DNA of 64,000 nt, taken from positions 24,820,134 through 24,884,133 of the forward strand of contig NC_069006.1 in NCBI RefSeq assembly GCF_001194135.2, written 5' to 3'. A program made the translations under genes and the position numbers. Under the pieces are notes generated by a model, which was not told where the DNA came from, made no database searches, and saw nothing but the letters and a program-made list of their open reading frames with translations. The stretch comes from Octopus bimaculoides. Lineage: Eukaryota. This document shows, piece after piece, positions 4,858-10,200 of the stretch (positions are counted from its first letter, which is position 1; the number at the start of each line of letters is the position of its first letter).

Positions 4858-5580
4858 ATGGAAACCAGCCCGCTTTCTGTTCTGTACGAAGTCCCCGAAC
4901 ATCTTGAAAAAGCTGACCTAGTTCCTGCAGTCTCCAAGCAAACAGTCGAACTCGAAAGTTCAACATCGAAAGGAAAGGTGAAGACCAACGAATTAAAATT
5001 CAAAAACGACCAAGAAGAATTTGAAGCCAACAATTCATCAGAAAATTCCGAGTTTACAGATAGCTGGGAATTAACAGAGTCCGTGAGTCCCTCAGAAGGG
5101 TCCCGGCAGCAGAGATCTTCCGGATCAAGTTTATTTTCGAACTCCTCGGAAACCAGCCAAACTGGTTCTCCAGAGATGCCCAAAAAATACGATAAACCCG
5201 TTCATGTGGTGTCCAAGTGCGAGGAGATTTTTTGTTTGATCTGCGAAAACAATCTGAAAATCTGTGGTTCTTCGTATACCAATATTTTTAAGGGACAGAA
5301 AAGGGGAAGCACCACGCTTCCCGAAAGAATATCTTCGTTTATCGGAGCAGCTGAAGACTTGAAGCTTTGTGATGTGGGAAGTTCCTACATGTGCGCACAA
5401 TGCCAGCGAAATCTACAAAAGGCAGAATTACTGGAGAAACAAGTCAACCAAATTCGGGACACTTTTACCAATTCTTTCTCCAATTTGAGTAGGAACAGTC
5501 GCATGAAAAAACGGCGGATCACATTGAACAACCAACAGCAGAGTTCGGTGGAGGTGAAACAATTGCAAATACGGATTAAG
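4858..5580 (+). CDS. Coding exon (241 codons): acidic/Ser-rich N-terminus followed by a ZAD/zf-AD-like C4 zinc domain and a basic KKRR motif; gene assignment unresolved
   Basis: ATG at 4858 after acceptor-like tttagtcAG (4838-39). Open to a phase-0 donor AAG|GTAAAC at 5580/5581. Translation has CLIC (aa126-129)...x49...CAQC (aa179-182) followed by the helix LQKAELLEKQVNQIRDTF, the typical ZAD layout. ORF text beyond 5580 is (GA)n microsatellite and intron. Confidence 0.7.
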
Positions 5581-7288
5581 GTAAACAGAGAGAGAGAGAG
5601 AGAGAGAGAGAGAGAGAGAATGTTCTGCACCATAAACCTTGTATATTGTTTCAAAGAGGATGCCTCGGAATTCTTTGTCATTTTCGTTAATATTTTGGAA
5701 GTATATTATTCTAGTTGCTATCAAGATGTGACTCCTGGTCAATTCTATATCTTTACTATATTATTTAGCATCACTTCCCTTTTACATTCTCTTCACCCTT
5801 TCAACATCATCGTCATCGTATAATCCATCTATNNNNNNNNNNNNNNNNNNNNNNNNNNNNNNNNNNNNNNNNNNNNNNNNNNNNNNNNNNNNNNNNNNNN
5901 NNNNNNNNNNNNNNNNNNNNNNNNNNNNNNNNNNNNNNNNNNNNNNNNNNNNNNNNNNNNNNNNNNNNNNNNNNNNNNNNNNNNNNNNNNNNNNNNNNNN
6001 NNNNNNNNNNNNNNNNNNNNNNNNNNNNNNNNNNNNNNNNNNNNNNNNNNNNNNNNNNNNNNNNNNNNNNNNNNNNNNNNNNNNNNNNNNNNNNNNNNNN
6101 NNNNNNNNNNNNNNNNNNNNNNNNNNNNNNNNNNNNNNNNNNNNNNNNNNNNNTCTCTCTCTCTCTCTCTCTCTCTCTCTCTCTCTCTTTATATATATGT
6201 ATGTATGTATTTGTGTGTCTGTGTTTGTTTCCCCAACATCACTTGACAACTGATGCTGGTGTGTTTACGTACCCATAACTTAGTGGTTCAGCAGAAGAGA
6301 CCAATAGAATAAGAACTAGGCTTACAAAAAATAAATTCAAGGGTCAATTTGTTCGACTAAAGGTGGTGCTCCAGCATGGCCACAGTCAAATGACTGAAAC
6401 AAGTAAAAGAATGTACACACACACACACACACACACACACACACACACACACACACACACACACACACACACACACTCATTAGTGTGACAGGTATCTAAT
6501 GTGTATGCTTGTACAAAAGTAAAAAAGCGCAAACATTTCGGTCTCAACTCAATACTCATCTGTAATCTGAATTCTTTCACCGATATATGAATCAGAGCAT
6601 GACAAAGAGCGAAGCAGTTATTACAGATAATAGCTCACGTCAGAAACTAGACTCTATAAGCATTATGTTCCTTATATAATATCCATTGTATTACCTAACA
6701 GCCATGCAACAAATATTGTATCAAATGACAAACCTTGACAAATACGGGACAAGAACTGAATCGGCAAACACCAAGTAGGATTTGAAAGCAATTCATGTTC
6801 ATGGAGTCTTCAAGGGATATGGGCTTAAGTCCCATAGCTGTTTGTTGACAAATGTTTCTGCTTTGTAAGGGCAATTTACCCAATGTTTCTGCTGTTCTAA
6901 CAGCGTCTCTGTGCTTGAAAATAAATAGTCATCTTATTTGTATCTTAATATACACATTTCGGAAACTGAAAGAAGCCCGTCGTATATATGTATATATATG
7001 TATGTGCGTGTATATGTTTGCGTTTCTGTGTTTGTCCCCCCCAACATCGCTTGACAACCGATGCTAGTGTGTTTACGTCCCCGTAACTTGGCGGTTCGAC
7101 AGAAGAGACCGATAGAATAAGTACCAGGCTTACTAAAGAATAAGTCCTGGGGTCGATTTGTTTGATTAAAGGTGGTGCTCCAGCATGGCCACAGTCAAAT
7201 GACTGAAACAAGTAAAAGAGTAAAGAGTATATACGTACTGTATATAGTTTTATTAAACACTATAAATGATATTCCTTGTTTTCTTCAG

Positions 7289-10200
7289 GAGTTGGAGCAG
7301 GAACGCCATGCATTGCGTTTGAGGCTGGAATCATTAGAGGCTGAGTATGAAAACACTGTGAAGGAACTTCAGGATGATGTCAACCAGCTGCGACAGGACT
7401 TACAAGGGCAGCAGCAACAGCTGACGGCAGGTGATAAAGACAAGGTGAATATCATACGGGAGCTGACGCATCAGAATGAACGGCTGAGCGACCAAGTGCA
7501 ACATGTAAGTAGCTCCACTCAATGGTCTCAATTATTCTCACTTTTGGACAGCAGTGTTGTTGTTTTTGTGTTCAATCAATGGTCACTCACAGCACCTCTT
7601 TTCCCAGAAATTGTTAAGAATCAGAAAAGAGGTTAACAACTTCTCACAGACAAACCAATATGTTACTGGTACGATCCATGGATGACTGGATGAATCCATT
7701 CACCTTTACACCCGCCACCATCCTCACCACCACCACCACCACCGTTTCTTCAAATATTTTTCTATAACATGGCACTAAACAAATTTTATTAGTTTGTTTG
7801 TTTTTAAATTTTAATTTCTTTAATTGTATTTTGTTGCTTTGGTTTGTATTCGCAGGCTGCTGAAACGGAAGGACAACTTGTTTCAGAAATAGAAGGATTA
7901 CGATCTCAAGTCTCCTTACGGATGTCAATGCCTGACCAACTCGATCAGTTGGATGCACTTCATGCTAAGGTAAGTAGCTCTGGCGGTTTTATATAATTAA
8001 TGAAAATGAATAGATAGTCAGTAGTTCAATTTATGCGACAAATGTTTCAGTAGCATGTTAATNNNNNNNNNNNNNNNNNNNNNNNNNNNNNNNNNNNNNN
8101 NNNNNNNNNNNNNNNNNNNNNNNNNNNNNNNNNNNNNNNNNNNNNNNNNNNNNNNNNNNNNNNNNNNNNNNNNNNNNNNNNNNNNNNNNNNNNNNNNNNN
8201 NNNNNNNNNNNNNNNNNNNNNNNNNNNNNNNNNNNNNNNNNNNNNNNNNNNNNNNNNNNNNNNNNNNNNNNNNNNNNNNNNNNNNNNNNNNNNNNNNNNN
8301 NNNNNNNNNNNNNNNNNNNNNNNNNNNNNNNNNNNNNNNNNNNNNNNNNNNNNNNNNNNNNNNNNNNNNNNNNNNNNNNNNNNNNNNNNNNNNNNNNNNN
8401 NNNNNNNNNNNNNNNACTACTTCAACAAGAATATTATCGACAAATTGGATGGAAAATGGCCAAACAAAAAAAAAAGGCTTTATTAATGACGTATTGTTAA
8501 TTAACAATACGTCATTAATAAAGCCTTTTTTTTGTTTTTTAATAAAAGCAATGTTTCGTTCATGTGAAAAGTTTTGCAACTTCCTTGTGGCCTGTAACTT
8601 GTTTGTGTTTGACATGGTTCTGCTTTGATAGTGAAAGAAAGATAGGTGTGTTTCTGTGTGATAAAGAGAGAGAAGGAGTGCATAGGGTTTGTGTGTGATA
8701 AAGAGAGAGAGAGAGAGAGAGGTGGAGGGTGTAACGATGTTTGTGAATAACTATGGAATTTCTTTTGTATGTTGTGAGGAAAGGGGCTTGATGTATTTAT
8801 TCCTAGATGTTATCTTTTCGAAGTAGCAATCTTTATTTTCACATGCTATTTTTTATACAGGAAACAGTATTGTTGATTTCGTTGTTCGACAACTCATTTC
8901 ATACTTATTCACTTGAGGTGTACGTACAATTCGTTCTATTGTCATTTTAATGAGATTGTTTATTTAACTAACAACCATTGTGCGGGCTAAATGTAAAGAT
9001 TTATGGGTGGAAGTGAGACAAAAATGTTCAGTTGTATTGTTATAAAGTTGACGGTCTTTTTATTTCCCTGTAATAAAAAAAAAGAGGGGATTTAGCAGAA
9101 TAGTAGAGCTTTGTTATGTTGCTTGCAGATTGGGTTTTGGGCTTCGTTTTGTGTCATAATCTAAGCAGATGTTACAAGTGGGAGGTGTTAAACTTTTCAA
9201 CCAAAGACTCGAAGAAAAAGAGAGAGAACTCACGTATACACATACAGGTGCACAAGGAGTGTTTTAAGTGGAATAGCTAAAACAGGAATTAAAAAACTAT
9301 ATCATTAAAAACACAATCTAATCTCGTTCTGTTACACAGCTGTAGAAAGAGGTGTGTGACTAAAGAAGTGCAAACAGGCAGACGATTGGTATCAGGTCAA
9401 ATTTAGGTTATTTATTTAAACATAGAGGTAGGATTGTTACAGGACTATAGATTACAAGAGGTTGGATAAAGGATCGATTGAGGAAAGTTTATAATGGTTA
9501 TGGTGTATGCTAGCATTGTCCTGGAACATTCACGTGGTAAATCTGATCATCGTAGATAGATGAGGAGGAAGGAAGATGTGCAGTATATCTTTTATACTCG
9601 GAAGGAGGTATTTTGTTAGAGCCACACCGAATTTTTTTATGTCTCTTTTGCTGGCTATCATCGCCATTATCATCATTTAGTGTCCGCTTTCCATGCTGGC
9701 ATGGGTTAGACTGTTTGACTGGAACTGGTAAACCTGAGAGCTGCCTCAGGTTCTAGTTTGATTTGGCATGGTTTCTATGGCTGGATACCCTCCCTAACAC
9801 CAACCACTCCAAGAGTGTAGTGGGTTCCTTTTACGTGTCATCGGCACCGACCCCAACTGCAATTTCAGCCACAACTACGATTGGCTTGACTTGTTCAACA
9901 ATTGCTTTCAATTGTTCATTGTCAAGACTGCATGACCGTCCTCTACCATTTTCTATCTTCAAGGCTCTCATCACCATTACGGAATTTCTGAAACCACCTT
10001 CGTACTGTGAGATCACTTGTAGACCCCTCTCCCCGTGCTCTGTTGATATTGGCAGTAGTTTGGGAGGCATTGTGTCCAAGCTTGAACTCATGCAAGAAAA
10101 GTAAGCAAAGGTCCTTTTTTTGTCATGTTCATAATTAAGGGCGCCTATGCTTCAAGAATGTTTTCTGTCTGAAATAAGTAAAAAAAATTATTAAAGAGCA

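Follow-up and report, generated by a model that had tools for sequence, protein, structure and literature searches.

Why should an exon that encodes a zinc-domain-like pattern of four cysteines lie in frame directly upstream of the coiled-coil exons of a dynein adaptor? Dynein activating adaptors fall into classes according to the element at their N terminus with which they bind the dynein light intermediate chain. The question arises from a stretch of Octopus bimaculoides DNA of 64,000 nucleotides (here, the window), in which such an exon occupies positions 4858 to 5580 of the forward strand, ahead of exons of the BICD-family gene BICDL1. From the evidence presented below, we conclude with considerable confidence that this exon serves O. 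bimaculoides BICDL1 (BICDR) as its proximal alternative first coding exon, that it is joined from position 5580 to position 7289, and that the CC1 box of the adaptor is swapped for a four-cysteine (C4) module as a result. Through alternative first exons, one gene would exchange its class-defining element for an unrelated, constrained, cysteine-rich module. The arrangement is kept across very divergent cephalopods, which makes it a natural experiment on a BICDL adaptor without a CC1 box. Removal of the CC1 box together with a conserved cysteine module (so far in cephalopods only) appears to have gone unremarked before.

The exon at 4858-5580 and its passage into exon 2

The boundaries and content of the exon were established by direct reading. 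Its 723 nucleotides form 241 stop-free codons, and the chance of an open frame of this length is approximately 1e-7, as judged from the local base composition. In-frame stops (TAG and TGA) lie 3 and 5 codons before the ATG at 4858, and the 3' end is a phase-0 donor (ATTAAG/GTAAAC). Cysteines are found at residues 121, 126, 129, 136, 171, 179, and 182, and four of these make up the pattern C126-x2-C129-x49-C179-x2-C182. The same four and C136 are invariant across Octopus, Argonauta, and a fourth, far more divergent cephalopod that we call species B. A basic patch, KKRR, is kept in all orthologues aligned, and the three aligned orthologues agree at every one of the final 15 residues of the exon, among them SVEVKQLQIRIK. 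The 104 residues at the N terminus, in which the Argonauta orthologue carries insertions, are probably disordered. An earlier note on this DNA, made from the letters alone, had described the length of the exon, its cysteine spacing, the KKRR patch, and the phase-0 donor, and all four were borne out. RRIT was considered as a conserved protein kinase A-type site and was ruled out, since species B has RRIN.

Farther along the same strand, the first coding exon to follow is the phase-0 BICDL exon at 7289 to 7504, again in agreement with that note. It has a strong acceptor (ttccttgttttcttcag/GAG) at 7289 and a donor (CAT/GTAAGT) at 7504, and it encodes BICDL coiled coil with 60 to 75% identity to the BICDL proteins of Pecten, Haliotis, and Tubulanus. 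Identity to human BICDL1 is presumably 46%, both for this exon and for the C-terminal exons. The tail of the first exon behaves as part of the same coiled coil: HMMER alignments to other BICDL proteins reach 7 to 29 residues into it, and AlphaFold predicts a single unbroken helix at residues 226 to 278, spanning the 5580/7289 junction, with a predicted local distance difference test (pLDDT) score of 92 to 97.

Gene models of the long isoform

The window matches O. bimaculoides CM046626.1 at all of 51,480 bases compared (0 mismatches) and has the same gaps. Two RefSeq proteins, XP_052833051.1 (isoform X2) and XP_052833050.1 (isoform X1), with 790 and 812 residues, have the window exon as residues 1 to 241, followed by ELEQERHAL. 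The X1 peptide maps exactly to 4858-5580, 7289-7504, 7856-7969, and nine more exons, ending at 41477. The same join is present in the 2015 models XP_014779620.1 and XP_014779621.1 (UniProt A0A0L8GMS6 and A0A0L8GMX1), and the same architecture is found in O. sinensis XP_036369412.1 and in Argonauta hians GAB1603790 and GAB1609549. In an exhaustive HMMER search, a query composed of the exon-1 tail and exons 2 and 3 aligned in one stretch (1-252) to XP_036369413.1, the BICD family-like cargo adapter 1 isoform X3 of O. sinensis, with E = 1.9e-153; an exact look-up of that accession in the contig collection gave no match. The direct join of this exon to exon 2 is thereby modeled in three octopod species and by at least two annotation pipelines.

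As a gene model, the long isoform is not new: RefSeq and UniProt have listed it from the first annotation of an octopus onward. Precomputed Pfam annotation of the long-isoform proteins lists only the C-terminal BICDL cargo-binding domain, BICDL2_C (PF27654), which is matched on XP_052833051.1 and on the product of the locus, and literature searches on BICDL/BicDR turned up no paper on this isoform. Early word-index searches for proteins, in which exon 1 and a BICDL composite were the queries, missed RefSeq proteins that are 96 to 100% identical to the query; these were recovered by the exhaustive search and by a later word-index search, and the early word-index negatives were given no weight.

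The canonical first exon uses the same acceptor

The canonical O. bimaculoides isoform, X3, is XP_052833052.1 (also XP_014779622.1 and UniProt A0A0L8GN38). Other proteins of the canonical form were found in O. vulgaris and, as a 610-residue protein derived from transcriptome sequencing (RNA-seq), in another cephalopod. The O. bimaculoides proteins start with MCSCSLQ, and in the O. vulgaris and RNA-seq-derived proteins the first stretch of residues is shorter and different; all of them carry DLILAAELGKALLEKN and, farther on, TLKID (TLRID in the RNA-seq-derived protein), followed by ELEQERHAL. The exon that encodes this N terminus lies outside the window: it precedes window position 1 by 27.4 kb and the ATG at 4858 by 31,956 nucleotides. 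It splices to the acceptor of exon 2, the same one that serves the long-isoform exon. Exon 4858-5580 sits within intron 1 of the canonical transcript. Because the canonical CC1-box exon lies upstream and uses the same acceptor, exon 4858-5580 is read as an alternative first exon and not as a nested gene. The earlier note had offered an alternative first exon of the adaptor as one of its explanations, and the models from three octopods, the canonical exon on the shared acceptor, and the exon, ATG, and donor of species B (below) agree with it. That note had also held against a joined product the case in which BICDL transcripts start outside the window; they do so for the canonical isoform, and the long isoform stands beside it.

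The two first exons share no similarity by BLASTP. Within the readable sequence of the window, motif searches and tblastn with seven lophotrochozoan N termini found no CC1-box exon, and no CC1-like motif occurs on the forward strand at positions 1 to 7300. All of the BICDL proteins retrieved from scallop, abalone, chiton, nemertean, annelid, and lizard have the canonical N terminus, from which the octopus long isoform differs. The helix that follows the second CxxC pair (LQKAELLEKQ) was considered as a degenerate CC1 box (LGKALLEKN) and was rejected: the small residues A, A, and G are lost, a one-residue insertion is needed, and BLASTP gives no similarity. The window itself starts directly after a 2,273-N assembly gap (L009 35105-37377, where L009 is CM046626.1:24782757-24871613 of GCA_001194135.2 and the offset to window positions is 37,377).

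Conservation in a divergent cephalopod

The sole other homologue of the exon that was found is an open reading frame (ORF) of species B, on a gapless 125-kb ENA contig (ERZ21867824 ctg110684l; L001). There the exon runs from an ATG to ATTAAG/GTAAA (L001 10196-11005), and the octopus and species B sequences are similar precisely up to the donor and no farther, with read-through tails that bear no relation to each other. BICDL exon 2 lies 15.3 kb downstream on the same contig and strand, with exon 3 next. The intron thus differs ninefold in length (1.7 versus 15.3 kb), yet the exon stays upstream of exon 2 and on the same strand. No CC1-box exon was found in the 15.3-kb intron of species B or in the 10 kb upstream, and the intron holds no match to the canonical BICDL N terminus, no conserved block, and no exon-like ORF.

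Selection on the exon was assessed from nonsynonymous (pN) and synonymous (pS) differences between octopus and species B. The C4 module is 80% identical in amino acid sequence, with a pN of 0.107 and a pS of 0.856; pN is 0.135 over residues 105 to 241 and 0.50 over residues 1 to 104. Synonymous sites are saturated (pS of 0.82 to 0.86), and low pN against this background indicates strong purifying selection on the module and the exon tail, whereas the N terminus is fast evolving.

What the first-exon swap changes in the adaptor

Three motifs of BICDR1 each have their own binding partner: the dynein light intermediate chain for the CC1 box (AAxxG), the heavy chain for the CC2 box (Gln150/His153 in mouse), and the pointed end of dynactin for the Spindly motif (bioRxiv 10.1101/2022.03.17.482250). 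In octopus BICDL1, the CC2 box, ELEQERH, is found at the very start of exon 2 (residues 242 to 248, with Q245 and H248; 7289-7309), and the Spindly motif, LFNEL (L-Phi-x-E-Phi), is at residues 441 to 445 (24849-24863). Of the two forms, the canonical one alone contains AAxxG; the 790-residue long isoform has none. The point of exchange lies between the CC1 and CC2 boxes. Since exon 2 opens with the CC2 box and no AAxxG is left, the swap exchanges the light-intermediate-chain-binding segment only. The earlier note missed the loss of the CC1 box, the main consequence of the swap.

A working model follows from this layout. Transcripts that start at the 4858 exon would splice 5580 to 7289 and give the 790- and 812-residue isoforms, and transcripts from the distal promoter would use the 93-residue CC1-box exon 32 kb upstream and the same acceptor. 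The long isoform lacks the CC1 box but retains the CC2 box, the Spindly motif, and the cargo-binding domain at its C terminus. Where the canonical form has the CC1 box, the long isoform carries an N terminus that is probably disordered, a conserved C4 module of zinc-binding type with a ZAD-like pattern, the KKRR patch, and a short helix leading into the coiled coil. The module would bind zinc and serve as a protein interaction or dimerization head, and KKRR, judged by its motif, may add nuclear import. Such a protein would be expected to engage dynein-dynactin differently, as a weaker or regulated activator, as a competitor for cargo, or with another partner or at another location.

Identity of the C4 module

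The earlier note had called the module a ZAD-like zinc domain. The cysteine pattern supports that description, and we treat the module as ZAD-like in pattern only, a C4 module probably of the treble-clef type. The first possibility considered was that it is a true, very divergent ZAD (zf-AD), exon-shuffled from a ZAD-C2H2 gene and acting as a zinc-dependent homodimerization head. We regard this as a serious possibility that falls somewhat short of being probable. In its favor, zf-AD (PF07776) is the top Pfam match for the trimmed Octopus module and is nearly full length (profile positions 2 to 71 of 75). The module also resembles the ZADs of Grauzone (PDB 1PZW) and ZNF276, which have the pattern C-x2-C-x45-50-C-x2-C near the N terminus, with a helix from the second pair; the spacing is x49 in the octopus module and x45 in Grauzone, and in both of these the second CxxC opens a long helix (in the octopus module predicted by AlphaFold from residue 180, with a pLDDT of approximately 75). 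The program hhalign places the second CxxC in register with that of Grauzone (LKPNDVGSYYMCAQC in species B and VLPNDEISKVICNVC in Grauzone, the latter sequence verified against 1PZW). ZADs are, moreover, described as sharing little beyond their four cysteines, and homology falls below 18% among the most divergent members (PMC7913770).

The scores themselves argue the other way. The trimmed Octopus module reaches 16.8 to 16.9 bits (E = 0.0076 to 0.0082) against a Pfam gathering cut-off of 28 bits, compared with 59.5 bits for the Grauzone control, and Pfam searches with the full exon or with the Argonauta or species B orthologues gave no zf-AD match, so that only one of three orthologues is hit. 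The hhalign probability against the Grauzone ZAD was 0.9% and not significant, and neither the module sequence nor a profile built from the three orthologues retrieved anything from the PDB at E values up to 10. Two AlphaFold runs on three-sequence alignments gave the module a pLDDT below 50, and Foldseek found no meaningful match in the PDB with the first of the two models, which are too poor for fold comparison. ZAD sequences were kept out of the AlphaFold alignment, as adding them was judged circular. Any treble-clef C4 knuckle would yield the same cysteine pattern, and the only ZADs described are N-terminal parts of C2H2 proteins, those of arthropods and, among vertebrates, ZNF276 (PMC7913770), whereas no C2H2 fingers follow the module here. 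The octopus module, unlike ZAD proteins, adjoins a coiled-coil motor adaptor instead of a C2H2 array, and it has about 105 residues, probably disordered, ahead of it. If it were a true ZAD, it would be a rare example of the domain in a protein other than a C2H2 transcription factor and in a lineage other than arthropods or vertebrates.

Comparison with other dynein adaptors

From exon 2 on, the long isoform is the same gene as canonical BICDL1/BICDR1 of the CC1-box class, and the two share the CC2 box, a long coiled coil, the Spindly motif, and the BICDL2_C cargo domain with conserved MSLNNQL...QQRDQWQ. They differ in that the N-terminal 93 residues of the canonical form, with the CC1 box LAAELGKALLEKN, are replaced in the long isoform by 241 unrelated residues. 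Within the family, Drosophila BicDR likewise yields two proteins, BicDR-A and BicDR-B, which differ upstream of the conserved cargo-binding lysine (K461 versus K555, 94 residues; PMC10917063), and the passage of that paper devoted to them mentions neither loss of the CC1 box nor a zinc module. The Drosophila isoforms are a precedent for N-terminal isoform diversity in this family.

In other adaptor classes, a Hook domain, an EF-hand pair, or an RH1 domain forms a distinct N-terminal module before the dynactin-binding coiled coil, at the place where these adaptors contact the light intermediate chain (bioRxiv 10.1101/2022.03.17.482250). Pfam scans showed no similarity of the octopus module to any of the three. 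It is conceivable, but we think unlikely, that a dynein activating adaptor has, in the C4 module, a previously unrecognized type of N-terminal head, which would make a zinc-dependent contact with the light intermediate chain or with another component of the dynein, dynactin, or LIS1 pathway, or would direct the adaptor to the nucleus or to a different cargo in cephalopods. Binding of the light intermediate chain by the module is pure speculation. Were the module such a head, alternative promoters would toggle the motor-coupling mode of the adaptor.

Weighing the join

Several points count against our conclusion that exon 4858-5580 is an alternative first exon of BICDL1. Support for the join comes from conservation and from models made by automated annotation (Gnomon, UniProt, and a DDBJ submission), and in species B the linkage between the exon and exon 2 is one of synteny only. 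The 321-N gap in intron 1 could in principle conceal a small exon. The AlphaFold model of the module is of the low confidence given above (pLDDT < 50), and zinc binding, dimerization, nuclear targeting, and the effect on dynein are inference only.

One rival proposal, also made in the earlier note, is that the exon belongs to a small or truncated zinc-domain gene of its own within intron 1 of BICDL1, in which case the public fusion models would be annotation chimeras. The join is indeed known here from gene models, Gnomon gives doubtful read-through models at the same locus (BICDL1-RUS1 in O. sinensis), and the exon starts with an ATG of its own and can be read past its donor as an ORF of 321 residues. 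Conservation between octopus and species B, however, ends exactly at the donor GT, and the last 15 codons, invariant in three orthologues, form one predicted helix with exon 2. The position before exon 2 on the same strand is kept despite the ninefold difference in intron length, and the identical join in models of three species comes from at least two annotation pipelines. Nor is there a downstream partner for a ZAD gene: as the earlier note had observed, C2H2 finger exons are absent downstream, with no stop-free C2H2 motif in any frame of window positions 5581 to 23990, and none occurs in the 25.6 kb downstream of the species B exon, whose intron is also devoid of exon-like ORFs. We consider a nested gene improbable, and the proposal was not upheld.

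The second alternative concerns the assembly gap at 5833-6153, which is intronic and begins 252 nucleotides past the donor. The frame that reads through from the exon stops at 5821-5823, ahead of the gap, so continuity of the frame across the gap is irrelevant to the 5580/7289 join. That an unseen exon in this gap (or in the gap at 2316-3135) belongs to the transcript, so that the true protein differs from the direct join, is very improbable: the gap is open in both assembly versions (the later one, GCA_001194135.2, carries the identical 321 N) and its length is an estimate, but the gapless species B intron holds neither a match to the canonical N terminus nor a conserved block, the direct join preserves the phase and yields an unbroken predicted helix, the (GA)n (5590-5620) and (TC)n (6154-6189) tracts at the borders suggest a microsatellite-driven assembly break, and a cassette exon would add an isoform without abolishing the direct-join one.

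Feature coordinates and neighboring observations

Table 1. Features of the BICDL1 locus. Coordinates are window positions unless L009 is indicated.
Feature	Coordinates	Strand	Remarks
Alternative first coding exon of BICDL1	4858-5580	+	Highly probable assignment; ATG to phase-0 donor AAG/GTAAAC; aa 1-241 of RefSeq isoforms X1/X2
Ser/Glu-rich, fast-evolving N-terminal region	4858-5169	+	aa 1-104; 34% aa identity, pN 0.50 vs species B
Four-cysteine (C4) module	5209-5472	+	aa 118-205; ligand candidates C126, C129, C179, C182
Basic patch KKRR	5506-5517	+	aa 217-220; candidate monopartite nuclear localization signal, by motif only
Exon tail QSSVEVKQLQIRIK	5533-5580	+	aa 226-241; start of coiled-coil helix running on into exon 2
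Intron 1 of long isoform	5581-7288	+	1,708 nt as assembled; holds gap 5833-6153
BICDL1 exon 2	7289-7504	+	aa 242-313; phase 0 at both ends; common to both isoforms
BICDL1 exon 3	7856-7969	+	aa 314-351
Remaining BICDL1 coding exons, part 1	~23990-24136, 24729-24914, 30393-30557, 33111-33338	+	XP_052833050.1 mapping and tblastn
Remaining BICDL1 coding exons, part 2	~34835-34900 (isoform X1 only), 36851-37051, 37702-37836	+	XP_052833050.1 mapping and tblastn
Remaining BICDL1 coding exons, part 3	~38261-38380, 41343-41477	+	XP_052833050.1 mapping and tblastn
Canonical first coding exon	L009 10001-10279		93 aa, CC1 box LAAELGKALLEKN; ends TLKID, GAT/GTAAGT

Intron 1 of the long isoform contains two same-orientation copies of a repeat of approximately 220 nucleotides that resembles a short interspersed element (6190-6410 and 6997-7219; 83 to 91% alike). 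From another cephalopod, 13 Logan RNA-seq contigs encode the C-terminal 417 residues of BICDL and have, at contig positions 1 to 290, a different, stop-containing 5' sequence before the equivalent of exon 4. These contigs may represent a third isoform that starts internally and is truncated at the N terminus, or the 5' sequence may be a retained intron.

Downstream of BICDL1, a minus-strand gene at approximately 42880-50474 (L009 80257-87851) encodes a 226-residue product with a 2OG-FeII_Oxy_2 domain (PF13532). It lies between BICDL1 and the RUS family member 1 gene (RUS1), which starts at 57671 on the forward strand and runs past the window end at 64000. The O. sinensis proteins XP_036369414.1 and XP_036369410.1 are read-through models in which exon 5 of BICDL1 is fused to exon 2 of RUS1 (junctions near 24914 and 58905), and they are probably annotation chimeras or rare read-through transcripts.

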